Positions 6,236-64,000 of a stretch of 64,000 nucleotides of DNA are shown in pieces. Under the pieces are notes generated by a model. The model ran no database searches. It saw only the letters and a program-made list of their open reading frames with translations, and was not told the DNA's origin. The stretch's first letter is position 1. Each line of letters begins with the position of its first letter. Location: the NCBI RefSeq assembly GCF_001194135.2, contig NC_068983.1, positions 88,268,679 through 88,332,678 on the forward strand, given 5' to 3'. Made by a program: the position numbers and the translations under genes. This stretch comes from Octopus bimaculoides. Taxonomy: Eukaryota.

Positions 6236-6812
6236 ACAGTGGCTTGGTAAAAGGGAAAAAGCTCAACCACAACCGGGAAGGGAACTTCATGGGAAAAGGT
6301 TCTTTTCTCTATCTGGTGAGATTGCAAAGGAGTAATTCACTTTGAATTGTTACCACCTAATGCAACAATCAATGCTCAAGTCTACTGTCAGCAATTAGAG
6401 CATTTGAACCATNNNNNNNNNNNNNNNNNNNNNNNNNNNNNNNNNNNNNNNNNNNNNNNNNNNNNNNNNNNNNNNNNNNNNNNNNNNNNNNNNNNNNNNN
6501 NNNNNNNNNNNNNNNNNNNNNNNNNNNNNNNNNNNNNNNNNNNNNCCCAACCTTGCTCCTTCAAACTACTATTTTTTTCGTAGTTTACAGAATCATTTGG
6601 GGGACATAACTTTCACAAGCTAGGAGGAGGTCGAAACTGACATTTCAGAGTTCTTTGCTTTGAAACCAAAAGAGTTTTACATTGATGGGATTCAAAAGCT
6701 TGTAAATAGATGGAAGGAAGTCATAGATAATCAGGGAAAGTACATTGATGATTAAATTTCAATTAAATATAACATTTGATCACTTGTTTTTTTTTATTCA
6801 AAATTTGGACGT
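6235..6812 (+). mobile_element. mariner DD(34)D transposase, 3' half (spans an assembly gap)
   Basis: RKQWL...LHGK, WDCKGVIHFELLPPNATINAQVYCQQL; after the gap PNLAPSNYYFFRSLQNHL...IQKLVNRWKEVIDNQGKYIDD* (YSPDLAPSDY-type motif). Confidence 0.92.
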
Positions 6813-7584: not shown

Positions 7585-7799
7585 NNNNNNNNNNNNNNNN
7601 NNNNNNNNNNNNNNNNNNNNNNNNNNNNNNNNNNNNNNNNNNNNNNNNNNNNNNNNNNNNNNNNNNNNNNNNNNNNNNNNNNNNNNNNNNNNNNNNNNNN
7701 NNNNNNNNNNNNNNNNNNNNNNNNNNNNNNNNNNNNNNNNNNNNNNNNNNNNNNNNNNNNNNNNNNNNNNNNNNNNNNNNNAAAAACTCAATTAAAATC

Positions 7800-8560: not shown

Positions 8561-9119
8561 ATANNNNNNNNNNNNNNNNNNNNNNNNNNNNNNNNNNNNN
8601 NNNNNNNNNNNNNNNNNNNNNNNNNNNNNNNNNNNNNNNNNNNNNNNNNNNNNNNNNNNNNNNNNNNNNNNNNNNNNNNNNNNNNNNNNNNNNNNNNNNN
8701 NNNNNNNNNNNNNNNNNNNNNNNNNNNNNNNNNNNNNNNNNNNNNNNNNNNNNNNNNNNNNNNNNNNNNNNNNNNNNNNNNNNNNNNNNNNNNNNNNNNN
8801 NNNNNNNNNNNNNNNNNNNNNNNNNNNNNNNNNNNNNNNNNNNNNNNNNNNNNNNNNNNNNNNNNNNNNNNNNNNNNNNNNNNNNNNNNNNNNNNNNNNN
8901 NNNNNNNNNNNNNNNNNNNNNNNNNNNNNNNNNNNNNNNNNNNNNNNNNNNNNNNNNNNNNNNNNNNNNNNNNNNNNNNNNNNNNNNNNNNNNNNNNNNN
9001 NNNNNNNNNNNNNNNNNNNNNNNNNNNNNNNNNNNNNNNNNNNNNNNNNNNNNNNNNNNNNNNNNNNNNNNNNNNNNNNNNNNNNNNNNNNNNNNNNNNN
9101 NNNNNNNNNNNNNNNNNAA

Positions 9120-10985
9120 AATAAAGTAATCTATTATTATATCCATAGGCGGATATTTTTAGTATGAAGTGGTAAAGAGTGTGATGTGCTGAAAAAAGAG
9201 AGAACAATACTTGAAGTGTAGTTTCATTCCAGTGGTAAATATCCGTGTAGAAATTCGTGCAAAGTAATCCTTGTGTGAATAATCCGGAAATTTATGTTGG
9301 AACGAGAGTTGATATAGCATAGATAGCAGAGGTATATATATTCCATATTGCGATAGAATTTTGCTTGTTTACTTGAAGAATGTCCAAGTCAAGTGAAAAG
9401 TTAGCGGTAATTAGGTCAAGTCAAGAAGATAGAATGTGAAAGGGGATAGAGGGGATATAGAGGCGGAGAAAGATAATGATATATTTATGGTCAGTTGGTC
9501 TTAACAGGGTAGAGGGGTTGAGCATATAGAGAGAAGGAGGAATAGGGGGATGAGGTTAAAAGGTCTAGTGAGTAGGAAGGAATGCGTGTGTGTAGTATAT
9601 AGGTGGTGGGGGTATGGGTGATAAACCAAGGACAGAGATAAAGGAGAGGGATGGGTGGGAAAGGTAGTTAGTAGTATCATATTTTAGGATGCTGCCAAGC
9701 CTATTTATAGACGGTGGAAAGATATTGAAAGAGGTGACGTAGTCTGTTTGTGTAGGTGGTGTTCTTGTGAAATTGAGAATATGAGAAATAGATTTGTTGG
9801 TACATGTGTGGTGAGATGATCGAAAGGAAATAACCCTATTCAAAAGGATGGTGAAAGATGGATGTTTTTGCCAGGTTGAATAGGTTGCCTGTGGGGGGTT
9901 GTGTTATTATGTTGCGTGATCATTTGTGCAATTTTGCTTGTGTTAGAACCTGAATGTGTGGAAAGACCGGTGGTTGCAGTTGCTAAACGCTTCATTATAT
10001 CGATTAAGTAGAGTGGGAGAATTGTATTTTAAAATATGGAACGCCTCCGTTAAGCATAGCTTGCAATTGGAGCGCTGACCCTGGTATGGAGTTCCAGAGT
10101 CTAATATGGACCATTTAAAGGTGTATTGGGTATTTTTGTTTTTGAGGTGATGAATATGATTAGCTAATGTTGTAGATTTACTGTGTTTGTCGTATCTAAA
10201 AGAGTGCATGTGGGCTGCGTAGCGATGTTTAAAGTTTATAGTTGCACCAATGTACGTGGCAGTAGAGTTATGTAATAGATTTTTGACGGTGCATTTATAT
10301 ATTACATTGTATCTTGCGCAATGTGTTTGAAGCAGACAGATAGTCCCGGAGCGACAGTTACAAGTGTAGGAGGCTAGAGGGTTGCGTATGCTTGTGGTTG
10401 AGTTATTATTATTGGAGGATATGTTATTAGGGGCTGTGTAGGAAACTAGATTAGTGGAATTATTGTTATGGCTATTAGTCCTATCAGTGTTATTATTGGT
10501 ATTGCTATTATCTAGAATATTAATGGGTTGGGATCCATTGTGGTTTTGTTCCAGTGTACGAGCGTTAGTGTTAGAAGAACGTATATTGATGTCCGTGTTG
10601 GGTGTATGTGTGGGTCGGGTGCTGGTGTTAGCATAGCTACGGTTGCTTAGGTTTTGGTAATAGAGCGAGAGTTTATGTTTGTTAGAAGCTGCTATAATAG
10701 ATTCAAAGTTAGGCTGTGGTACACCTCCCATTCTCTCTTAACACTAGGAACCTAGCCAAATCTTTCTTTAAAATACTAGATTCTAACTTCCCACGACAAC
10801 ACAAATACCACTCTATATTCTACAGATCCACTTTAAAATTATCGTATTCTACCACTCCTAACTTTGAATCTATTATAGCAGCTTCTAACAAACATAAACT
10901 CTCGCTCTATTACCAAAACCTAAGCAACCGTAGCTATGCTAACACCAGCACCCGACCCACACATACACCCAACACGGACATATAA
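9120..10985 (-). mobile_element. Penelope-like element: GIY-YIG endonuclease ORF and 3' region, with an inverted 5' segment
   Basis: ORF 9943..10731(-): CNCR...VIYKCTV...TYIGAT...FKHRYAAHMHSF...LANHIHHLK...WSIL...CKLCLTEAFHIL...LLNRYNEAFSNCNH. ORF 10716..10985(+): PFSLNTRNLAKSFFKILDSNFP...KLSYSTTPN, the RT-to-EN linker of Penelope. Confidence 0.92.
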
Positions 10986-11376: not shown

Positions 11377-12343
11377 NNNNNNNNNNNNNNNNNNNNNNNN
11401 NNNNNNNNNNNNNNNNNNNNNNNNNNNNNNNNNNNNNNNNNNNNNNNNNNNNNNNNNNNNNNNNNNNNNNNNNNNNNNNNNNNNNNNNNNNNNNNNNNNN
11501 NNNNNNNNNNNNNNNNNNNNNNNNNNNNNNNNNNNNNNNNNNNNNNNNNNNNNNNNNNNNNNNNNNNNNNNNNNNNNNNNNNNNNNNNNNNNNNNNNNNN
11601 NNNNNNNNNNNNNNNNNNNNNNNNNNNNNNNNNNNNNNNNNNNNNNNNNNNNNNNNNNNNNNNNNNNNNNNNNNNNNNNNNNNNNNNNNNNNNNNNNNNN
11701 NNNNNNNNNNNNNNNNNNNNNNNNNNNNNNNNNNNNNNNNNNNNNNNNNNNNNNNNNNNNNNNNNNNNNNNNNNNNNNNNNNNNNNNNNNNNNNNNNNNN
11801 NNNNNNNNNNNNNNNNNNNNNNNNNNNNNNNNNNNNNNNNNNNNNNNNNNNNNNNNNNNNNNNNNNNNNNNNNNNNNNNNNNNNNNNNNNNNNNNNNNNN
11901 NNNNNNNNNNNNNNNNNNNNNNNNNNNNNNNNNNNNNNNNNNNNNNNNNNNNNNNNNNNNNNNNNNNNNNNNNNNNNNNNNNNNNNNNNNNNNNNNNNNN
12001 NNNNNNNNNNNNNNNNNNNNNNNNNNNNNNNNNNNNNNNNNNNNNNNNNNNNNNNNNNNNNNNNNNNNNNNNNNNNNNNNNNNNNNNNNNNNNNNNNNNN
12101 NNNNNNNNNNNNNNNNNNNNNNNNNNNNNNNNNNNNNNNNNNNNNNNNNNNNATATATATACATATACATATACATATATATATATTGATTGATTGATTG
12201 ATTGATTGGCCGATGATTAACTGACTGACTGGCTGACTGACTGATGAATGTTGTATTTACAAACATAAGAAAAAACACAAAATACTTCAAGTATGTTTAT
12301 TAGAAGATGAATTTTCTCGAATCAACTTTTATGATCAATGCAG

Positions 12344-12563: not shown

Positions 12564-13289
12564 GTATGTTTCTCATAAACTAGAAAAGGATGACAATGTT
12601 AACATATAGCTTCTCTTGGACTTGTGGCTAGTCTCTATCTACCCTTTCCAACTAATTGAGTATTTACAACAACCATTGTTTCTTTTCCCTCAACAACAGA
12701 AAGTATCTACTCCTATCTCCCCTTTTTCTTCCCTCTCTCTTCTTTTCTTTACTCCTGACAACCTTATACGATTCCCACTCCCAAATATTTGACCCCATCT
12801 TTTCCTTTTCTTACTTCTTGACTGTTTTATTTCATCAAACATTTGTTTTTCTATTGTGTTCTGGTTTCACCATTCATTTTAACTCACATGTAACATGAGT
12901 AAACTTAGAAATTCCAAGCAATAATGTAACCTTCATGTAATTAAGGTATTCCCAGCCTCAGGATTTGCTAAGTTGAGCTATCTTCTGCTCTTGGATTGAA
13001 AAAGTATAGCCTTCAAGTTATGACATGATGTAGTGGCCACAAGTAGCTATAAAATATCTCATGAACAAATGGGAAAGCGATGCCTTTAAAACCCAAGGTG
13101 CAATCAGAAATGTTAATTATGTCACTTTTCTGTGAAAGACATAGCACATGTAATTTAGCAGCTTCCCAAAACTGTCATCAAGGTAGCACTTCCCAATGTG
13201 ATATGACATTTTTGGTTAAAACAATATACAATACCATGTGATATAAAAACTGCCCTGTCATAAATATAGAGACTCCTCCTTTTATTGAA

Positions 13290-13515
13290 TCTGTTATCTT
13301 TTATTTGTTTCAGTCATTAAACTACAGCCATGCTGGGGCACCACCTTGAAGAATATTTTTAATCAAATGTATTGACCCCAGTACTCATTTTTTTTAAAGC
13401 CTGTAACTTATTCTATTGATCTTTTTTGCTGAACAACTAAGTTACAGGAACACAAACAGACCAGCACTGGTTATCAAGCAGTAGGGTTGGGGCTGGACAA
13501 ACACACACACACACA
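13290..13515 (-). mobile_element. SINE family B, 3' module
   Basis: ttacttgtttcagtcatt...catgctggggcaccacc...cttttttgctgaacaactaagtta; matches 26700-26900. Confidence 0.75.
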
Positions 13516-13519
13516 CACG

Positions 13520-14038
13520 TATATAGAAGTGCCTCACAGAGGCAATGACTGATGACCGAGACCTTTGGCAATGTGCTATGCCTGAGAGGACCCGTCAGGC
13601 CAAGTGGACCTGTGCTGGTGGCATGTAAACGACACCTTTTAAGTGTTGGGCTTCACAGAGGCAAAGTGGCTGAGTTCCTTTCGAGTGTTGGGCTTCATGG
13701 AGGTAATGACTGAGACCTTTGGCATTATGTCATGCTTCAGAAGAAGACCCATCAAGCCGAGCAAAAACATAGTTGTAGCAGATACTGTTGTCATGCAAAT
13801 TGGCACCCATGCCAGTGGCATGTAAAAGTACCCTGGTGTCACACAAATGGCACCCATGCTGGTGGCACATAAAAGCACCCATTACATTCTTGGAGTGGTT
13901 GGCATTAGGAAGGGCATCCAGCTGTAGAAAACCATGCCAAATCAGACTGAAGTCTGGGGCAGCCTTCCAGTGTGCCAGCCAGGTCAAACTGTCCAACCCA
14001 TGCCAGCATGGACAACAGACATTAAATGATGATGATGT
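13520..14038 (+). mobile_element. RTE LINE 3' end (about 520 bp)
   Basis: cacagaggcaatgactgatgaccgagacctttggcaatgtgctatg through to ccatgccagcatggacaacagacattaaatgatgatgatg. Confidence 0.88.
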
Positions 14039-16285: not shown

Positions 16286-17305
16286 NNNNNNNNNNNNNNN
16301 NNNNNNNNNNNNNNNNNNNNNNNNNNNNNNNNNNNNNNNNNNNNNNNNNNNNNNNNNNNNNNNNNNNNNNNNNNNNNNNNNNNNNNNNNNNNNNNNNNNN
16401 NNNNNNNNNNNNNNNNNNNNNNNNNNNNNNNNNNNNNNNNNNNNNNNNNNNNNNNNNNNNNNNNNNNNNNNNNNNNNNNNNNNNNNNNNNNNNNNNNNNN
16501 NNNNNNNNNNNNNNNNNNNNNNNNNNNNNNNNNNNNNNNNNNNNNNNNNNNNNNNNNNNNNNNNNNNNNNNNNNNNNNNNNNNNNNNNNNNNNNNNNNNN
16601 NNNNNNNNNNNNNNNNNNNNNNNNNNNNNNNNNNNNNNNNNNNNNNNNNNNNNNNNNNNNNNNNNNNNNNNNNNNNNNNNNNNNNNNNNNNNNNNNNNNN
16701 NNNNNNNNNNNNNNNNNNNNNNNNNNNNNNNNNNNNNNNNNNNNNNNNNNNNNNNNNNNNNNNNNNNNNNNNNNNNNNNNNNNNNNNNNNNNNNNNNNNN
16801 NNNNNNNNNNNNNNNNNNNNNNNNNNNNNNNNNNNNNNNNNNNNNNNNNNNNNNNNNNNNNNNNNNNNNNNNNNNNNNNNNNNNNNNNNNNNNNNNNNNN
16901 NNNNNNNNNNNNNNNNNNNNNNNNNNNNNNNNNNNNNNNNNNNNNNNNNNNNNNNNNNNNNNNNNNNNNNNNNNNNNNNNNNNNNNNNNNNNNNNNNNNN
17001 NNNNNNNNNNNNNNNNNNNNNNNNNNNNNNNNNNNNNNNNNNNNNNNNNNNNNNNNNNNNNNNNNNNNNNNNNNNNNNNNNNNNNNNNNNNNNNNNNNNN
17101 NNNNNNNNNNNNNNNNNNNNNNNNNNNNNNNNNNNNNNNNNNNNNNNNNNNNNNNNNNNNNNNNNNNNNNNNNNNNNNNNNNNNNNNNNNNNNNNNNNNN
17201 NNNNNNNNNNNNNNNNNNNNNNNNNNNNNNNNNNNNNNNNTTCTTTACCTCCGCCTACATATCTGTGTACATACCTGTGTGTATATACATATATACTTAC
17301 ACGAT

Positions 17306-19989: not shown

Positions 19990-20760
19990 ATCATCATCAT
20001 CATCGTTTAACATCTGTTTTCCATGCTAGCATGGGTTGGACTGTTTCACTGAGGTCTGGAGAGCCAGCGGCTGCACCAGGCGTCAATCTGATCTGGCAAT
20101 CTTTCTACAGCTGGATGCCCTTCCTAACGTCAACCACTCTGAGAATGTAGCGGGTGCTTTTTACATGCCACCAGCACAGGAGTCGGTCAGACAGGCCTGA
20201 ATAGTGCTTTTTACGTGCCACTGGCACGGGAGCCAGTCAGGGGGTACTGGCATTGGCCACGTTTGGATTGTGCTTTTTACATGCCACCGGCATGGGAGCC
20301 AGTCAGGTAGATCTGGCATTGACCACATTCAGATGGTGTTTTTAACATGCTACCTGCACGGGAGCCAGTCAGGGGGCACTGGCCACAGCTAGAATATTGG
20401 TTTTACTTGGCTCAACAGGTCTTCTCAAGCTTATCATATCACATGATGCATCAGAGGTACTCTTAACTGGGCCGGACATGCTTGGCTGTGATCTCACTTT
20501 AGTTGCTGAGTCTTCTCAATCACAGCATATCTCCAAAGGTCTTGGTCTCCTCTCATTGCCTCTGTGAGGCCCAATGTTTGAAGGTCATGCTTCACCATCT
20601 CATCCTATGTCTTCCTGTCTACCTCTTCCACAGGTTCCTTCCACAGTTAGGAAGTGGGTAACACATGACCATACCAGCGTAGTCTTGCTCACCACATTTG
20701 ATGCTTTTTATGCCCAACTTTTCTCTCAGGGTGCTTACACTCTGTTGTACATGCACACTG
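19990..20760 (-). mobile_element. RTE LINE 3' end (ORF C-terminus plus tandem-repeat 3'UTR)
   Basis: Paralogous to 52900-53660; includes the GRGRPRKTW-type ORF end and four ~60-bp UTR repeats. Confidence 0.9.
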
Positions 20761-24879: not shown

Positions 24880-25690
24880 TTACAAAAGCCATTTCTTGTT
24901 AATGCATACCTTCAGTAATGGTAACTCAGTTAAAAAGGTTCTTGCCAGATGATAGATTGGAAACTCTTCTACTTAGGCTGTATATAAAGTTTCTATTATA
25001 ACTGAGAGAGTAGTTGCAGTTCTTGTGTATGCATATGGTTTCCTTGTTTGGCTTTCTATAGAGGTGAAGTCTGCCTATAATCAAATCTAGTTGGATGTCT
25101 GATAAGTTTGTTGTTGTTATATGAGAAACAATGTTCATGTTTAAAGTGAATTTTAAAAATATTCTTGTTAGACTCTTTCTGAGTCTATCAACATTGTGAC
25201 TGTTCATGTTGTAGAAAATTGCTAAGCCACCATATCTGTGCTATGGAGGAGTTTGTTTACTGGAGATATCTAGGAAGGAAACTGTCTTCAGATCTGATAT
25301 TTCTGCTCAGCAAATAAAGGATCATCTTCCTTTCATCCAATAAGAGTTGTCAAGGTACAACATTGACTTCCTCATATCTACCTTGCTAATGGTGATATAT
25401 GTTCCCCAAATGCCTGGGCTTTCAGGGGAGGGGTATTTAAATATAAATGGCTAGAAATCCACCATATCAAATTAGGTGAATCTGCAAAATGGTTTGTTTT
25501 CTATACTTTTAAACCACTTAATTATAGTGGTACTACATTTCCATTGTCCCAATATTAATAGTGTTTCTTATTTTAAGGTTAATCATTTTGAGAATAGGCT
25601 AACTAAAGTCAGTTCTTGTAGGTTTTTAATTAAGCTACATCTGGTGTTGGAGGAAAGTTCATCTTATCATCTTTAGGGGTAATGTAAGGT
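24880..25690 (-). mobile_element. Decayed Penelope-like RT fragment
   Basis: Minus strand: FDMVDF (FDIVDFYPSI-type motif); DRLRKSLTRIF...LDL..GRLHLYRKPNKETICIHKNCNY...SRRVSNLSS (Penelope RT C-terminus). Confidence 0.8.
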
Positions 25691-26551
25691 TTGTGTCTAA
25701 TAAGACACCTCTGCAGCCTTGTACTTCTAATTTGGAAGCTAACTCTTTTGTTTTTACGTTTTATGATGGTAATGTGAGTGTGTTTGCATGTGTTCTTTCC
25801 CTACTTATTCCAGTTTCTAAAGCTAAGAATTTCAGAATATTAAAAATAAAAAAAGAATATTTTAAATATTGACCCTTATAAATTTTAACAAATAGATTTT
25901 GAGAAATACACTCATGAATGAATTCCTGAGATCTCTTTTAATTTTCCTATCTTTTTTTTTTCTGAACTGCATCCTTGGCAGTTGATTCTCATTATTTTAC
26001 TGTTTGGGCAAAACATCAAGAAATAGCATTTTTACACAAGCAAGATTAAGTGTCTAGTCCTGATTTATACTTCACACCAACTGTCTTTCTCTCTTCACCT
26101 ACACCTCGTCTCTCTCTCTCTCTCTCTCCCTCCTTCTCTCTCTCATATGTTAATCCTGTTCACAGCTATTTTAGTCTTTTACTTCACTTCAGATTTAAGG
26201 AAGTTTAGTTAGTTGTCAAAAAAATCATTACTATTATTTTTATTACTGTTGTTGTTATTGTGTCCTTGTGTGACTTAGTAAAAATAAACCATTGTTATTA
26301 CTATTCCTGTTGGTGCATTTGTTGCTGTTGTTGTCTACACTATTATCTAGCAGTGCTGCATAACATGCTGGCTTTGCCAACAGCAACAACACTTATCACC
26401 ACTAACCTGTACAACAACTGTTGCTGGACTTTACATCAGAATATTTTAGTTACTGTAATTAGTTTATAGATTTTCTTGGGCTTGCCACTAAACACTACAT
26501 AGTAGATAAATAACTAAATGATATACATACATACATATANNNNNNNNNNCT

Positions 26552-27106
26552 AGTACTTATTCTATTGGTCTCTTTTGCTGAACTGCTAAGTTATGGGTAT
26601 ATTAACACAAACATCAGTTGTCAAGCAATGCTGGCGGGGACAAACATAGACACAGACACACATAAATATGTGTGTGTGTGTGTGTGTGTATACTCTTACT
26701 CTTTACTCTTTTACTCTTTTACTTGTTTCAGTCATTTGACTGCGGCCATGCTGGAGCACCGCCTTTAGTCGAGCAAATCGACCCCAAGACTTATTCTTTG
26801 GAAGCCTAGTACTTATTCTATCGATCTTGTTTGCCGAACCACTAAGTTACGGGGACGTAAACACACCAGCATCGGTTGTCAAGCGATGTTGGGGGGACAA
26901 ACACACAAACACATACACACAGACATATATATATATATATATATACGACGGGCTTCTTTCAGTTTCCGTCTACCAAATCCACTCACAAGGCTTTGGTCGG
27001 CCCGAGGCTATAGTAGAAGACACTTGCCCAAGATGCCACGCAGTGGGACTGAACTCGGGACCATGTGGTTGGTAAGCAAGCTACTTACCACACAGCCACT
27101 CCTACG

Positions 27107-27144
<38 letters not shown>

Positions 27145-27295
27145 GCTTCTTTCTGTTTCTGTCTACCAAATCTACTCACAAGGCTTTGGTCGGCTTGAGG
27201 CTATAATAAAAGACACTTGCCCAAGATGCCACACAGTGGGAATGAACCCAGATCCATGTGGTTGGGAAGTAAGCTTCTTACCACACAGCCATGAG
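26552..27295 (-). mobile_element. Cluster of SINE family B copies (well-preserved full copy 26692-27115; extra 3' module and extra head)
   Basis: Head with B-box-like gagttcagtcccactgcgtggc and CORE-like ccttgggcaagtgtctt, then (TA)n, then 3' module ending gactgaaacaagtaaaagag. Confidence 0.88.
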
Positions 27296-29312
27296 ATTAG
27301 TGCATAAAAGTGTTTATTTCTCACACACACACACACGTACATGCACACACATACAATGCAAGTAAAGGGACCCTGCAGAATAGGAAAACTGTAAGATGTG
27401 AAAATAAGTGAAGGCAGAGCTTAGGGTACCAAACCTCACAAAAGATTTGACAAATGACTGCAAGAGTGATGAGGCACTGAACTCCAGAAGACCTGCCTAA
27501 TCCACTGAAGTATTGTAAAACAAGCTTTAAAATGATAAAAGATAATAATGGTGGTATGTTCACTCACACACACATATATATATGTACAGGAATAAATATA
27601 TTCATATAGATAGATACACATAAAAAGCTTGCACACACACACACACACACAAGAAGGCTATCCAACCTTAGGAAGAGGCCTAAATGAAATATACAAGCAA
27701 AATGTGGTTCTCGACTCATCTAGAAGGTTATTAACTTCATACAAGAACTGGCTCAGATTGTGACCACCCAGCCAACCCATGCCAGCATGGAAAGTAGATG
27801 TAGAGTGATGTGTGCTTGTATCTGCACACACACACACACACACAANNNNNNNNNNATATATATATATATATATATATATATAGGAGAGAGAGAGAGAGAG
27901 AGAGAGAGCACTCACACAAAATCAAAATTGTTCACTTATGCAGGCAATCATTATCTGCAAAATGTAGAATGGAACAATTTTTATATTGAATACATTTTAA
28001 ATGTATATATTGTATATCAACATAAATGTATTTTATGATTTGTTACAATTATCTTTACATAATATTTATTAAAAAGTGTTTGTCAAATGATAATTAAGTT
28101 CATTTTTTTTAGAAGAGGCTATTTTGGGCCAAACTTTGCTGCAGGTTTGCTATATTTAGTAAAATTCAGGTAGTCTGGACATATAATCGTAGTTGATGGT
28201 AGGTACTAAAAGAGAATGACTCTCCCCAGACAATAAAACTAGATGTTTTTTTTTGTTTATTCCGTAGGTCTACTCTGACAATAAACATCTGTCATTAAAA
28301 ATGTTCCAGCTGTAACTATCAGTTATAGTGTATTTGGGACTACATTATCCAGTGAATCTGTCTCTTTTTAACAACAATACTTCTACTAGCCCACTTTCAA
28401 CTACCACAGCAGTAGTACTCCTTGTTTTTGCTTCATATTCTGCTTCTCACATTGTTTACTAATACATTTTTCCATGGCACAACCAACCATATTTGTATAT
28501 CTTTATTCACTACTACTCTCATTTATCCTACAACTATATCATCACCACATTCACTTCCTACTGCAAACAACCTTTCAAGAGTAAATCTGTTCCATGTTGA
28601 TTCCATTATGATCTTTCATACATGGCACTGCTTTCCTTCTTTAATCTAGCAGCACCTTATTTCAACTCTTTCACCTGCTTCCTTTTCTAACCTTGATACA
28701 GTTGGCTTTCCATAACCTCGTATGTCTTCCTACCTCCAATCTTTCCATATGTGGCAAATCCTTCCTATTTCAATCATGGCACTGCCAAACTTCTGTACAT
28801 GCTTTTTACCTGTTTAACCATCATACTGTCATTGTTCCCTACAAGATAATCATCTTCTTTCTCTTAACTTTTGCCACACTATCAGTAATATTTAATTGAT
28901 CATCCTGTCACTGATAGTCAATCCAGAGTTTTCTAATGTCAATGTAGGTCAAGCAGTATGGACATTATGGTAGCCGGTGATTGCTAAATAAAGGTTCTTG
29001 TCATTTGTTTAGCTTCAATGCTGCTTTAACTGAGCTATTCAACTGTGACCACCCTACCATTTATTTATTTATTTATTTATTTATTTTCAAATGTCACATA
29101 TCTGATTGTATTATCCAGTATTTTGTTCCTCTTAAGTTTTCCTTAGGTTTGGACAAGCCAGGGCTCAAGAAAATTTACTGACCAACTGCGTCCTGATGGT
29201 TTTATCACTCTTGGCCCTTGATTGCTTATTCAGCTGGTGCACCTTCTTACATTGCAGTTTTCTAATAATATATATGCAGAGCATTTCCCAATCTGCCACT
29301 TGGAGGACATAC

Positions 29313-34260: not shown

Positions 34261-34734
34261 AGCAAATTTAGCAAAACATATTAAGCAACACTAAAAATAA
34301 ATCAAAACACATAAAAGTAAATAAGCTTTTGACAGTTTTATAGATATTTCAAAATTATAATGCTATGATGCTAGCATTATTTTGTCTAACACCTGTATGT
34401 ATATACAGACAGACATATACACACACACATATATATGGCACAGAATCTAGGAAACTGGCCTTATGAGCTTATGGTTCAGGAACAACCTTTGATTTTTTGA
34501 TAAATATACACAAACATAGGCGCNNNNNNNNNNNNNNNNNNNNNNNNNNNNNNNNNNNNNNNNNNNNNNNNNNNNNNNNNNNNNNNNNNNNNNNNNNNNN
34601 NNNNNNNNNNNNNNNNNNNNNNNNNNNNNNNNNNNNNNNNNNNNNNNNNNNNNNNNNNNNNNNNNNNNNNNNNNNNNNNNNNNNNNNNNNNNNNNNNNNN
34701 NNNNNNNNNNNNNNTATATATATATATATATATA

Positions 34735-34945
34735 TGTATATGTATGTATGTGTCTGTGTTTGTCCCCCAACAACCGATGCTGGTGTGTTTACGTCCAGCC
34801 ATAACTTAGCGGTTTGGCAAAAGAGACCGATAGAATAAGTACTAGGCTTTCAAAGAATAAGTCCTGGGGTCAATTTCTTGGACTAAAGGTGGTGCTCCAG
34901 CATGGCTGCAGTCAAATGACTGAAACAAGTAAAAGAGTAAAACAC
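34735..34945 (+). mobile_element. SINE family B, 3' module
   Basis: gtgtttgtcccccaacaaccgatgctggtgtgtttacg...gactgaaacaagtaaaagagtaaa. Confidence 0.85.
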
Positions 34946-52898: not shown

Positions 52899-55800
52899 AA
52901 TCATCGCCATCATCGATTAACGTCTTTTCCATGCTGGCATGGGTTAGACTGAGGTCTGGAGAGCCAGTGGCTGCACCAGGCTCCAATCTGATGTGGCAAA
53001 GTTTCTACAGCTGGATGCCCTTCCTAATGCCAACCACTCTGAGAGGGTAATGGGTGCTTTTTACGTTCCACCAGCACAGGAGGCAGGCCTGGCAATGATC
53101 ACATTTGGATGGTGCTTTTTATTTGCCACTGGCACAGGAGCCAGTCAGGTGGACCTGGCATCGACTATGTTCAGATGGTGCCTTTTATGTGCCACCAGCA
53201 AGGGAGTCAGTCATGGGGCACCAGCCCCAGCTATGATATTAGTTTTACTTAACTCAACAGGTCTTCTCAAGCATATCATATCACCTGACGCATCAGGGGT
53301 ATTCTTAACAGAGCTGGACGTGCGTGGCTGCGATCTCACTTTAGTTGCCGGGTCTTCTCAATCACAACATATCTCCAAAGGTCCCGGTCCCCTGTCATTG
53401 CCTCTGTGAGACCCAATGTTCGAAAGTCATGCTTCACCACCTTGTCCCATGTCTTCCTGGGTCTACCTCTCCCACAGGTTCCTTCTACAGTTAGGGAGTG
53501 GCATTTCCTTACATAGCTGTCTTCATTCATACATGGTCATGTGTCTTCAACACATGACCATGCCAGCACAGTCGCCTCTCTTGCACACTGCATTTGATGC
53601 TTCTTATGCTCGACTTTTCTCTCAGGGCGCTTATACTCTATCGTGTATACGCACTGACATTATACATCCAGCGGATCATACTAGCTTCATTTCTTTCAAG
53701 CCTACACATGTCCTCAGCATTCATGACCCATGTTTCACTGCTGAGTAGAATGGCAGTTTGCACACATGCATCATACAGTCTACCTTTCACCCTGAGCAAG
53801 AGACCCTTAGTTGCCAGCTCCCTGAACTTTGCCTAGGCTATTCTTACTCTAGTTTCTACACTCTCAGAGCAACTGTCCTCACTACAGACTTGGTTGCCTA
53901 GGTAGCAGAAGCTATTAACTACTTCTAGTTTCTCCTGACATGTGATGGAATCTGTTTTCTGTACATCTTCAGTGTTTATTGCCCCAGTGCATCTGCCATA
54001 CACAAAAACTATTTTCCCAGTTAACCTTCCTTTGATATTGCCGCACATTTTATGTGTCCATAAATTACACCGGGTACATCGTATAGAGTTTCTACCCATG
54101 CCTTTTCTACAGATCGAGCAGGGCCATCTACCTGAAGGGGGTTGTGATTTGACAGCCTTCTTACTTACTGAGACTTTGGTTTTGGCTAGGTTAACCCTAA
54201 GGCCCTTTAATTCTAGACCTTGCTTCCACACCCTAAACTTTGTCTCTAGTTCTGGCAGTGACACAGCTATTAGTACAAGATCAACAGCATAGAGGAGCTC
54301 CCAGGGGCAGCCTCTCATGAATTCTTCTGTTATTGCCTGGAGGACTATAATGAATAAGAGTGGGATGAGGACTGATCCTTGGTGAACCCCTACTTCCACT
54401 CAGAATGCTTCACTATACTCATTGCCAAACCCCACCTTACTGACAGCATTCCTGTACAGGGCTTGTACAGCTCTTACCAGCCACTCATCTATCCCCAGTT
54501 TCCACATTGACCACCAGATAAGGGACCAGAGGACCCTGTCAAAGGCTTTCTCCAAGTCAGCAAAAGCCCAGTACAGAGGTTTATCTTTGACTAGGTATTT
54601 CTCCTGCAGTTGCCTTACCAGAAATATAGCATCAGTAATGCTTCTGCCTGGCACAAAACCAAACTGCATCTCATCTAGGCTAACTCTCTCCCTAATTAGT
54701 TGGGCTATGACCCTCTCGATAACTTTCATCACCTGATCCAATAATTTAATACCCCTGTAGTTATTTCTATCTAAAGCACCTTTCCCCTTGTAGCAGCTGA
54801 CTGTGGTGCTGCTACACCAGTCATTGGGTATGACTCCATGAACTACCTGATTTACGATGCGGGTGACAAGACTATAACCCACACCACCTGATATTTTAAG
54901 TATCTCAGCAGTGATTCCTGATGGGCCAGGTGCTTTCCCTGTCTTCATATCCTTAATTGCTTTATCTACCTGGGAGCATTATCATTTTTGTTTTATTATT
55001 TGCCTTCTTTAATATGTGTGTACATATAAACACTGAAAATGTGCAGAGAACAGCTTCTGTCGCATTCCAGGGAGAAAAATTACAAGTAGTTGATGGCTTC
55101 TGTTACCTGGGGGATCAGATCAGTAGCAGGGGTGGATGTTCTGAATAAGCTGCTAGAATAAGAATAAGAATAGCCTGGGCAAGGTGCAGAGAGCTCCTAT
55201 CTCTGCTGGTGACAGGGGACCTCTCACTCAGTGAAAGGTAGACTGTATGATGCATATGTGCAAACAGCCATGCTACATGGCAGTGAAATGTGGGCCGTGA
55301 CTGCTGAGGACGTGTGGGCTTGCAAGGAATTAAGCCAGTATGCTCCGCTGGATGTGTGATGTCAGTGTGCATACATGACTGAGTGTGGGCACCCTGAGAG
55401 AAGGGTTGGATTTAAGAAGCATCAGATGTGGTGTGCAAGAAAGATGACTGCACTGGTATGGACATATGTTGTGAATGAATGAGGACAGCTGTGTGAAAAA
55501 GTGTCACACTCTGGCAGTTGAGGGAACCTGTGGAAGAAGTAGACCCAGGAAGGCCTGGGATGAGTTGGTGAGGCACAACCTTCGAATGTTGGGCTTTACC
55601 AAGGCAATGACTAGTGACTGAGATCTTTGGAAGTATGCTGTGCTTGAGAAGACCGAACAAGCCAAGTGAGACCATAACCCATGGCCTATGCCACTGGGTG
55701 TATCCAGCCCACTTATGAGTACCCTTCATCCATATGAAAAAAAAAATTTGCTTGCAAAGACCAGTTGAGGCAAGTAAAATCAAAATCAAAATTGCTGACG

Positions 55801-57680
55801 TGGCCGATAACAGTACCACTTGATTGGCACTTGTCCTGGTGGAACGTTAAAAGCTCATCCGAGTGTGATCGTTGTCATGGCCGCTGATTGATTTCCGTGC
55901 CAATGGCACATGAAAAACAACATTCAAGCATGGTCATTGCCAGTGCCGCTTGACTGGCTCCCATGCAGGTGGCACGTAAAAACACTTTTTGAGCATGGTC
56001 GTTGCCAGAACTGAATGACTAGCCCTCATGCCAGTGGCACGTAAAAGCACCCACTACACTCTCAGAGTGGTTGGCATTAGGAAGGATATCCAGCTGTAGA
56101 AATTTTGCCAGATCAGATTGGAGCCCGGTGCAGCCTTCTGGCTCACCAGTCCTCAGTCAAACTGTCCAACCCATGCCAGCATGGAAAGCAGACGTTAAGC
56201 AACGACGATGATGATGTACTGTTGATTCAGATAGCTGGTCCCTCAATTGGGTTAACCTTTGGCAGACTCTCATCCTCCCATTCATTCTCTACATTCAGCA
56301 GTCTTTCATAATGGCATCCCCAAGCCTTTTTCTTTGCAGAATCATTAAACGCAAGGGCACCATCATCCATGTGGACACATTTCTCTCCTATGACATTATG
56401 GTTTTCTCTCAATCACTGTCTTGCAATCTGAAACACTTCAGTTCTCTGGTCCTCACATTGTTAAACATTGGCAAACTTCTTTTCTGCTACTCCCTTGGCT
56501 ATATATACCTGTCACTTAGCTTCCCTTTTGGCTATCTGATACATTCTCCAGCTACCACCACTCTTCCAGGCATTCCTAGTCTGTTTCTCTGCTCTAATGG
56601 CCCTGTCTACAGTATTGTTTCACCACCATGTTACCCTAGGTCTGGAAGGGTCTTTGCACCAGCCACAGATTTGGTCTGTGGCACTCAGCAAGCTGTCTCG
56701 CAGGAATTTCCATCTGCCTTCTATGTCACAAGACTGTAGCTCCTCCTCCCTATCATCAAGTTTCTTGGTAAGGATATCCCTAAATCTGTGACCTTCTGGC
56801 CTCGAGTCTAAAGTCACTAATAACTATTCTATGTTGGTGGGGTACATTCTTCACCAGGGAGGGTCTTTGTATTTAAGAGCAACCATGCATTCGCTGTCTG
56901 GTGAGAATGAAATCGATTTGGCTAGCAGAGTCACCTGATTGATAGGTTATCAGGTGGTTAGCTGGCTTCCTGAAGTTAGTGTTGCAGATCAATAGGTTAT
57001 TTGCTTCGCAGAACACCAGGAGCCTAGTTCCCTCTTTATTTCTGGTACCAACTCCATGCCCCCCTATTACACCATGTAAGATACTAGATTGCTGTCCGAC
57101 ATACCCATTAAAATCTCCAGCCACAAAGATGAGATCATTATCACTCCTATTTGAGGTAGCCTGCAGAAGAATATCATAAAAGTGATCCTTCTGTTCATTT
57201 AGTACACCTGCTTGTGGGGCGTAGGCAGAGATTATTGTAGCTATACCATTCTGCAAGACTAGCCTGAGTTTAAGTACTCTATCGCACACCCTCACACCTC
57301 TATGACCTTATCCACCCATTTCTCTGGAAGATGTATGCCCACACCCCCATTCCATCACTATTGCCTTCCCAGAAGAGCTTATACCTATGTGCTTTGCCTG
57401 TGAAAACTCTGGATGAAGCTCCTCTCTATCTTACCTCTTGTATGCAACATATATTAACACACCTCCATTCAAGCACCCCTACAATCTCGCTAGACCTACC
57501 TTTCAATGTGTCTACATTTAGAGTGCCATCTCTGTAAACTAGGAAAAAGATATGGGAGGTAACACAGGAAGGATAGATGTTATTCAGTACCTGAAAAGAA
57601 GGTTCCCATGAATGTTTGGTAACAAGCGTCTTAATAGTTGTCCTTGCTGTTAACCTACCGTCATTCAAACATGTTAGAGT
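52899..57680 (-). mobile_element. Near full-length decayed RTE-clade LINE (host copy), split by a nested insertion at 54975-56215
   Basis: EN: GTLNVDTLKGRSSEIVGVLE...CCIQEVR, ISAYAPQAG, AGDFNG, SQIDFILTR. RT: MKTGKAPGPSG, NYRGIKLL, QFGFVPGR, DLEKAFDRV, VGVHQGSVL.PLLF, LLYAVDL, FCYLG. Tail: GRGRPRKTW, then ...catcgccatcatcg. Confidence 0.95.
54975..56215 (+). mobile_element. 5'-truncated RTE copy of the same family inserted antisense into the host copy
   Basis: INTENVQRTAS..FQGEKLQVVDGFCYLGDQISSRGGCSE through tandem UTR repeats to ...gacgttaagcaacgacgatgatgat; about 50 bp of unrelated filler at the 5' junction. Confidence 0.92.
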
Positions 57681-61098: not shown

Positions 61099-61194
61099 NN
61101 NNNNNNNNNNNNNNNNNNNNNNNNNNNNNNNNNNNNNNNNNNNNNNNNNNNNNNNNNNNNNNNNNNNNNNNNNNNNNNNNNNNNNNNNNNNNNN

Positions 61195-63039: not shown

Positions 63040-63202
63040 GCAGGCATGGCCATGTGGTAAGAAGCTTGCTTCTCAGCCACATGGTCCTGGATTCAGTTCT
63101 ACTACATGGCATCTAGAGCAAGTATCTTCTACTATAACCCTGGACTGACCAAAGCCTTCTGAGTGGATTTGGTAGATGAAAGAAGCTCATCGTATATATG
63201 TG

Positions 63203-63280
<78 letters not shown>

Positions 63281-63490
63281 GTGTGTCCCCCACCACTGTT
63301 TGACAACTCGTGTTGGTCTGTTTATGTCCCTGTAACTTAGCAGTTCAGCAAAAGAGACCAATAGAATAAGTAACAGGCTTCAAAATAAAATTTGAGTACT
63401 GGGGTTGATATATTTGACTAAAAGTTCTTCAAGGCAGTGCCCCAAGATGTCCGTAGTCTAATGACTGAAACAAGTAAAAGGTAAAAGATG
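63040..63490 (+). mobile_element. Full-length SINE family B
   Basis: Head (gtggtaagaagcttgct...ggattcagtt), (TA)n, 3' module ending gactgaaacaagtaaaag. Confidence 0.85.
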
Positions 63491-63558
63491 TACTCGGTGC
63501 TTTTTACATAACCAGCAGCATTAGAGAGGTTACCTAGTAACTGACAAAACAGGAAAAA

Positions 63559-63976
63559 AAAACAAGCAATGTTAATTCTCTAAATGCAGTTACTGTTAAT
63601 ACTTCATTTAGAGAATTAACATTGCTTGTTTTCACTTTTTCGATATCAGTGAAGAATTTCACTGGAAAAATATACATATGGTTGCCAAGAATTTGTACCT
63701 CTCATCAAAGGTCGGTAGCTATCGGACGCTGACGAAGGGAAATAACCCTGAAACCCGGGTCCGTTCGTGCTACGATCAAGATGAGAGGGGTAACTTCCCT
63801 TGGCAAAACAAACAGGACACAGTAGTGTGTCGATAAGCCAGCTGGAGGAGATGTCCTCCTGGGGCTAAAGCAACAGTAACATCCACCCCTAGGGGTCAGC
63901 CACACTTAAGTGGCAATACACTTCACTTTATCGTGCAGTTATTGTTAATACTTCATTTAGAGAATTAACATTGCTT
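63559..63976 (+). mobile_element. Retrozyme-like / non-autonomous Penelope-type element: 349-bp monomer, 43-bp terminal direct repeat, inverted 5' end
   Basis: Direct repeats 63585-63627 and 63934-63976 (1 mismatch); inverted repeat 63559-63586 versus 63605-63632; followed by (TA)n; contains the hammerhead; no credible ORF. Confidence 0.72.
63715..63773 (+). ncRNA. Type I hammerhead ribozyme (predicted cleavage after C63761, GUC)
   Basis: Stem I cggacg (63723-28)/cgttcg (63762-67) extended by gtagc/gctac across an internal loop; core CUGACGA 63729-35; stem II aggg-aaataa-ccct; GAAA 63750-53; palindromic stem III a-cccggg-u; H17=C. Confidence 0.88.
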
Positions 63977-64000
63977 ATATATATATATATATATATATAT

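Follow-up and report, generated by a model that had tools for sequence, protein, structure and literature searches.

At the right-hand end of the 64-kb stretch of Octopus bimaculoides DNA that we analyzed (the window) lies a short element carrying a hammerhead ribozyme motif, laid out as one full 349-nt unit, preceded by the end of another unit and by a short inverted stub (Table 1). Its direct and inverted repeats are long and near-perfect, and each is unique within the window. The first-pass annotation of this DNA had described a 43-bp direct repeat with a 349-bp period, a perfect inverted copy of its start of about 28 bp, and a (TA)n tract behind it; all three are there, the first 28 nt of the inverted-repeat arms being perfect. 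If a 3-nt indel is allowed, the inverted arms can be followed to 63553-63590 and 63601-63641 (38 of 41 positions). The partial unit stands head-to-tail with the full unit and head-to-head with the inverted stub, and the turn-around point of the insertion is a small natural hairpin, TGCAGT-N10-ACTTCA.

Table 1. Coordinates, in window numbering, of the hammerhead element, its parts and flank, and the candidate mobilizer relic.
Feature	Position	Strand	Description
Direct repeat	63585-63627 / 63934-63976	+	43 nt, 42/43 identical, spacing 349 (repeat finder)
Inverted repeat	63559-63590 / 63601-63632		Arms of 32 nt, 97% complementary, one mismatch, 10-nt spacer
Inverted 5' stub	63553-63590	-	Unit sequence 63601-63632 (as far as 63641 if a 3-nt gap is allowed), in reverse complement
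5'-truncated partial unit	63585-63627	+	Equals the final 43 nt of one unit
Full 349-nt unit	63628-63976	+	Phased on the insertion's 3' end, ...AACATTGCTT, then (TA)n
(TA)n flank	63977-64000		On the 3' side of the insertion, stopped by the window end
Type I hammerhead core	63723-63767	+	Covariance model, descriptor, and direct reading
Extended hammerhead domain	63700-63786	+	Long interrupted helix I, from RNA folding
Penelope-like element relic, predicted Hydra clade	9946-10737	-	Stop-free segment with CxCX5C linker and GIY-YIG-like endonuclease
5' inverted repeat of the relic	10589-10713 / 10857-10981		Perfect, 125 nt, 143-nt spacer

The junctions between units tell something of the template. 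Because the contiguous direct copy measures 392 nt, or 1.12 units, the template must have exceeded one unit, as a multimer or as a circle. The junction GCTT^GTTTT (junctions and the cleavage site are marked ^) occurs twice, once in the direct copy and once in the inverted copy; the inverted stub, whose own 3' end points outward to the left, crosses the unit-to-unit junction ...CATTGCTT^GTTTT... and covers it as AAAAC^AAGCAATG. Moreover, the stub agrees with the internal copy of the junction for 5-11 nt past the end of the 3'-terminal copy, and therefore derives from a longer-than-unit template and not from a terminal repeat. The outward 3' ends of the two copies fall 5-14 nt apart on the unit.

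A hammerhead had been attributed to the monomer in the first-pass annotation without coordinates, and we have now located it (Table 1). The sequence, CGGACG-CUGACGA-AGGG-AAAUAA-CCCU-GAA-AC-CCGG-GU-C^CGUUCG, was checked against the core positions C3 U4 G5 A6 N7 G8 A9, G12 A13 A14, A15.1-U16.1, and H17, and every invariant one is present: CUGACGA at 63729-63735, GAA at 63750-63752, A63753 paired with U63760, and C63761 as C17. The geometry is open at helix I, which has 6 bp (CGGACG/CGUUCG); helix II has 4 bp (AGGG/CCCU) and a 6-nt loop (AAAUAA), and helix III has 2 bp (AC/GU) and a 4-nt palindromic loop (CCGG), with ACCCGGGU self-complementary. Cleavage is predicted between 63761 and 63762, after C63761. 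Helix I extends outward from the core through an internal loop (UAU/U) and then GUAGC/GCUAC, GGUC/GAUC, and UCUCAUC/GAUGAGA, for about 16 further bp. Canonical metazoan type I hammerheads, which are active as dimers, have a helix I of 6 bp, a helix II of 4 bp, and a helix III of 1-2 bp whose palindromic loop has 2-4 nt (PMC4209133); the octopus motif agrees with this geometry in every core nucleotide and helix size.

The motif at 63723-63767 is a well-formed type I hammerhead, beyond what chance provides. It is the sole match of our own descriptor in the window, on both strands; with the observed helix lengths as thresholds, the strict form of the descriptor matches 3 of 1000 dinucleotide shuffles of the window, while a lenient form matches 7% of shuffled windows. 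We also built a sequence-neutral covariance model from 60 synthetic sequences that follow the published consensus geometry with random covarying helices, and ran it with filters off. This model scores the motif at 39.3 bits (E about 5e-9), full-length and with no indel, as compared to 12.8 bits for the next-best place in the rest of the window, and 22.4 and 19.4 bits for the hammerheads of real Penelope-like element (PLE) contigs. When two copies of 63700-63790 are co-folded, helix III forms between the two molecules, over 8 bp, and gives a double hammerhead whose predicted stability exceeds that of two monomers (-75.7 versus 2 x -35.1 kcal/mol). Both the descriptor and the covariance model place the ribozyme on one polarity only, which fits retrozymes and not viroid-like or delta-like agents.

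The interior of the unit had been described as rich in hairpins and free of any credible open reading frame (ORF), and both statements hold. Its longest ORFs are of 66 aa (GTG start, minus strand) and 52 aa; we found no homolog of the former, and neither the latter nor a 47-aa ORF is on record in the collections searched, none of which contains this genome. The hairpins listed earlier are all present, in the sequence and in the minimum-energy fold. Folded as a circle, the unit reaches -110.7 kcal/mol with 60% of its bases paired (z = -5.5; none of 200 shuffles is as stable), as compared to z-values of -2.2 to +0.5 for fifteen segments of the window taken as controls; it takes the shape of a multibranched domain, with the ribozyme's extended helix I as the closing stem. 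GC content is 43.8% in the unit and 36.6% in the window. Using the pattern CTGANGA-N(8-24)-GAAACCCGGGTC, we also scanned metagenome and viral contigs, with at least 120 and 9 matches, respectively; those that we examined all fall by chance in coding sequence (for ribonucleotide reductase and zinc-finger repeats), and none resembles the element.

Short repeats that bear hammerheads include Sm-alpha of Schistosoma (about 335 nt) and satellite 2 of newts (about 330 bp). These resemble the octopus element in unit size, in a type I hammerhead with a 6-bp helix I and an internal loop of 3 nt versus 1 nt, in a 4-bp helix II with an A-rich 6-nt loop, and in a weak helix III and double hammerhead; they differ from it in host phylum, in sequence, and in helix II, which is GUC(C)/(G)GAC as against AGGG/CCCU.

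The closest parallel is with the metazoan retrozymes that lack long terminal repeats (LTRs). These non-LTR retrozymes consist of 150-450-bp units with a GC content below 50%, and their RNA is highly self-paired (Cervera & de la Pena 2020, PMC7229834). Hammerhead-bearing retroelements of 150-450 bp are known from molluscs and many other animals, with repeats of 350-390 bp in the mussel Mytilus (PMC7229834), and the giant squid genome has 235 matches to the Rfam model Hammerhead_1 (PMC6962438). The octopus element shows the same set of features: a non-coding unit of 349 nt with GC below 50%, a canonical type I hammerhead, no LTR, primer-binding site, or polypurine tract, an RNA predicted to be highly self-paired, a mollusc host, and PLEs that co-exist with it. 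It departs from metazoan retrozymes in comprising 1.12 units and in being the sole copy in the window. Most invertebrate retrozyme hammerheads cleave efficiently, whereas those of amphibians must act as dimers (PMC7229834); with its weak helix III the element is of the dimer type, as in amphibian retrozymes.

The layout of the insertion, in turn, is that of a PLE. Standard PLE insertions consist of a partial tandem that forms pseudo-LTRs (pLTRs), often with an adjacent inverted 5'-truncated copy, and they often carry an optional 'tail' of 30-40 bp (PMC8557442). The octopus locus has both the partial tandem and the adjacent inverted 5'-truncated copy, in line with the PLE-type inverted and tandem ends that had been proposed for it. 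Both (TA)n and AT-rich targets have been reported for the GIY-YIG endonucleases of PLEs (PMC8557442, PMC11167929); in the one biochemical study of a PLE, done in vitro, the enzyme prefers AT-rich sites and cuts and extends both DNA strands, and it initiates reverse transcription within a multi-copy RNA, at two neighboring sites (PMC11167929). The mechanism of the PAc Poseidon PLE of Anolis (Frangieh et al. 2024, PMC11167929), with alternative start sites 30-40 nt apart (the 'tail'), would fit the layout of the element. PAc is, however, an autonomous 3-kb PLE; its hammerhead needs the protein, and is dispensable for insertion in vitro (PMC11167929).

A candidate for the mobilizing machinery is found in the same window, as a relic at 9946-10737 that ends ...CNCRSGTIC...NVIYKC...YIGAT...CKLCLTE...NCNH and is preceded by an Asn/Thr-rich low-complexity stretch. 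A word-index protein search with the relic gave no match, and searches of Pfam, NCBIfam, and PDB sequences gave none for either the relic or full-length Hydra-like proteins; an exhaustive HMMER search retrieved 3402 relatives in the protein library. Among these are a UniParc entry with 91% identity and the O. bimaculoides protein XP_014775464.1 (P0122) with 59% identity, in support of the octopus origin of the window. The O. bimaculoides protein is annotated as 'probable serine/threonine-protein kinase roco9', which appears to be a misnomer for a protein of the same transposon family as the relic. Two full-length relatives, P0123 (806 aa) and P0170 (720 aa), carry RWK, DKT, and YRDDG, a CxCX5C linker (CxCX7C in P0170), and, at the C terminus, a GIY-YIG-like domain with CxxC ahead of the conserved E and CxH past the conserved N, and this list is that of the diagnostic motifs of the Hydra clade among PLEs (Craig et al. 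2021, PMC8557442). By way of these motifs in its relatives, the relic is assigned to the Hydra clade. P0123 and P0170 (loci L130-L132), which comprise both reverse transcriptase (RT) and endonuclease (EN), have no Pfam-A match at E <= 0.01 and only a weak precomputed one to DUF8422; annotation based on domains would therefore overlook the clade.

PLEs of the Hydra clade are short (<3 kb), always have canonical hammerheads, and are almost always inserted in (TA)n (PMC8557442). In the two contigs that encode P0170 (L131 and L132), the ORF is flanked by two direct hammerheads 2359 bp apart, of which the one on the 3' side overlaps the stop codon and has a helix III, AC-AUAU-GU, of the same plan as the AC-CCGG-GU of the octopus element. 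Another contig (L135) has a hammerhead-like motif past the stop codon, followed by TATATATA, and we found no hammerhead in the 3' flank of the relic in the window. The element is like Hydra-clade PLEs in its canonical hammerhead near the 3' end, its adjoining (TA)n, and its partial tandem with inverted 5' copy, and like the hammerheads of the relatives in an AC-NNNN-GU helix III with palindromic loop; it is unlike them in having no RT/EN ORF, a length of only 349 nt, and a much longer helix I.

Other parts of the window were also compared with the element and with PLEs. The sequence TGATCGAAAGGAAATAACCCT at 9816-9836 (+) matches the helix II region at 63730-63749 at 20 of 21 positions, a level seen in 1 of 300 shuffles, and lies 110 nt from the stop codon of the relic; because it lacks an intact catalytic core and runs antisense to the relic ORF, we do not count this match as evidence, and it is either a chance match or a decayed inverted fragment. 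A stop-free segment of 104 aa at 24929-25240 (-), with HRYGGLAIF...LYRKPN..., corresponds to the second PLE relic named in the first-pass annotation and has no Pfam match; we take it to resemble the C-terminal part of a PLE reverse transcriptase, from the pattern RYVDD...FLD...YRKP.

Among the other repeats, the one nearest to the element resembles a short interspersed element (SINE). This SINE-like repeat (63045-63492), directly upstream and separated from the element by about 60 nt of unique sequence, has a tRNA-like head and an internal (TA)n tract, and at least 10 relatives in the window (e.g. 26707-27293, 13289-13492, and 34715-34942). Short tandem arrays of period 47-66 that share the motif GTGCTTTTTACATGCCACCGGCA... 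(20204-20383, 53108-53235, 55927-56050, and 13785-13880) apparently belong to another repeat family, of whose motif a fragment, gtgctttttacat, lies at 63499-63511, just 5' of the element. A long interspersed element (LINE) of RTE/CR1 type occupies 53836-54978 (-) and 56876-57307 (-), with RVT_1 split between two neighboring ORFs (E = 1e-12 and 2e-6), a fragment of an Exo_endo_phos_2 endonuclease upstream, and a best database identity of 72%. The window has nine runs of N (6413-6545, 7585-7781, 8564-9117, 11377-12152, 16286-17240, 26540-26549, 27846-27855, 34524-34714, and 61099-61194) and is therefore a gapped short-read scaffold, in which tandem or inverted repeat structures may have been collapsed; many of the long 'ORFs' that were listed mechanically are N runs. 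The neighboring ORFs of the window, searched in the same collections for a way past the window end, are not on record.

Taken together, the locus is probably one genomic insertion of a non-coding, non-autonomous hammerhead element of about 349 nt that was mobilized by a PLE, that is, a non-LTR retrozyme. As such it is a new example of the known animal retrozymes and no new kind of element; a 2026 preprint argues that retrozymes derive from PLEs and are non-autonomous (10.64898/2026.07.22.740005). A source locus elsewhere would be transcribed as a multimer, in which the weak 2-bp helix III and palindromic loop would allow two ribozymes to combine into a double hammerhead and excise monomers of 349 nt that a host ligase may circularize. 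The RT and GIY-YIG endonuclease of a PLE would then cut AT-rich or (TA)n DNA on both strands, and each 3'-OH would prime reverse transcription from an internal initiation zone of a longer-than-unit (multimeric or circular) RNA. The two cDNAs would meet head-to-head, leaving 1.12 units in one direction and a short stub in the other, with their 3' ends outward; the (TA)n at 63977-64000 is the probable target microsatellite. The most likely class of PLE for this role is the Hydra clade, a sharper candidate than a generic Penelope because the clade is reported with canonical hammerheads and (TA)n insertion, and a relic of it is in the window.

Several observations weigh against this reading, at the level of the ribozyme, the locus, and the proposed partner. 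Rfam Hammerhead_1 (RF00163) gives no match to the motif, either at the gathering threshold (34 bits) or, on 501-nt and 101-nt slices, at E <= 10; what Rfam does find is confined to generic hairpin matches to the fold-back. As a control, the same model gives the PLE hammerhead in contig L131 23.6 bits, also below gathering. The Rfam consensus has a helix II of GUC...GAC, as compared to AGGG...CCCU in the window, where the 10.1-11.1 pair is A-U and not G-C; the miss is likely due to this atypical helix II (A10.1-U11.1), that is, to a sequence bias of the model, and the atypical pair might also lower activity. The 5' flank of the insertion is an A run and then unique sequence, not (TA)n, and the window stops 24 nt past the element, so that no target-site duplication can be read. 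There is no second copy of the 418-nt region within the window, nor any copy in the searched collections, none of which contains this genome, and where retrozymes repeat at least two ribozyme-bearing units in tandem, the locus as assembled has 1.12 units and one hammerhead. Its own transcript, with one ribozyme, would presumably be cut once and could not yield a circle; the earlier caveat that about 1.1 monomers and a single ribozyme are unable to release a monomer thus holds for the locus as assembled. Finally, the unit resembles neither the PLE relics nor the Hydra-like PLE contigs in nucleotide or coding sequence. The relics had been put forward as the kind of PLE that could have copied the element, and of that proposal the endonuclease relic at 9.9-10.7 kb stands, now placed in the Hydra clade, while a sequence link to the element is absent; the connection between element and relic appears to be by class only.

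The alternative that survives best is that the sequence is an internally deleted or solo-terminal remnant of one autonomous PLE, in which a single deletion fused the 5' end to the 3' pLTR, and which would imply neither a dedicated short family that amplifies nor a small RNA. Hammerheads do occur in the pLTRs of PLEs, the window holds no other copy, and retrozymes are phylogenetically related to pLTRs (10.64898/2026.07.22.740005), so that the boundary between the two readings is thin. Yet the spacing at which the 3' end returns is exactly 349 nt, and of the two occurrences of GCTT^GTTTT one is inverted; hence, it seems, the 349-nt form was already the template unit at insertion. A deletion after insertion leaves this recurrence unexplained, and our search of the unit for PLE coding remnants found none. 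We therefore regard a PLE remnant as unlikely.

It is also improbable, in our estimate, that a longer tandem array was collapsed by the short-read assembler to 1.12 units, in which case the real locus would have several ribozymes and could release monomers itself. Short-read assemblies are known to break at tandem and inverted structures of PLE type (PMC8557442), the nine N runs make the window a gapped scaffold, and a single pass through a collapsed loop can yield 1.12 units; the two 43-nt copies differ, however, at one base, and hence are not a simple k-mer overlap.

We give very little weight to a cut-and-paste DNA element akin to a miniature inverted-repeat transposable element (MITE), with terminal inverted repeats of 27 nt (63564-63590 and 63950-63976) and an incidental hammerhead-like motif. 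The outer ends are mutually inverted at 26 of 27 nt, but no target-site duplication is visible (the left flank is ...AAAAAAAAAC and the right one ATATAT...), the repeat recurs internally as a third copy that, with 16 further nt, forms the 43-nt direct repeat, which a MITE has no need of, and the left arm matches the internal copy past the right terminus. Scarcely credible is a chance hammerhead-like motif in an unrelated local duplication or hairpin, for which the silence of the Rfam model and the 7% of shuffled windows matched by the lenient descriptor could be cited, but against which stand the 0.3% of shuffles matched by the strict descriptor, the full-length, gap-free match to the neutral model at E about 5e-9, a helix I that runs about 16 bp further and closes a fold with z = -5.5, a palindromic helix III as the dimer mechanism requires, and a position within a PLE-type insertion beside (TA)n.

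The retrozyme reading can be carried further, to a recent insertion of an active cephalopod retrozyme family that passes through double-hammerhead processing, circularization, and rolling-circle, twin-primed copying by a Hydra-clade PLE into (TA)n. We consider this fuller account possible but doubtful. One locus alone is an anecdote, and its extra value is modest, consisting of a clean head-to-head, junction-containing insertion beside (TA)n with a Hydra-clade relic in the same window.

For hammerhead surveys, Rfam Hammerhead_1 misses well-formed hammerheads whose helix II is other than GUC/GAC, and counts for cephalopods that are based on Rfam, such as the 235 in giant squid, may be too low. 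Animal retrozymes are thought to be mobilized by PLEs, and support for this has so far come from co-occurrence and pLTR phylogeny. If the fuller account is true, the octopus lets the still-hypothetical partnership of retrozyme and PLE, and a circular template, be read from insertion junctions. Copies that repeat the head-to-head layout, the longer-than-unit template, and the (TA)n target would give evidence of the partnership at the level of junctions and would also indicate a specific clade, Hydra. With the present find, cephalopods would join the hosts of such hammerhead circular-RNA elements.

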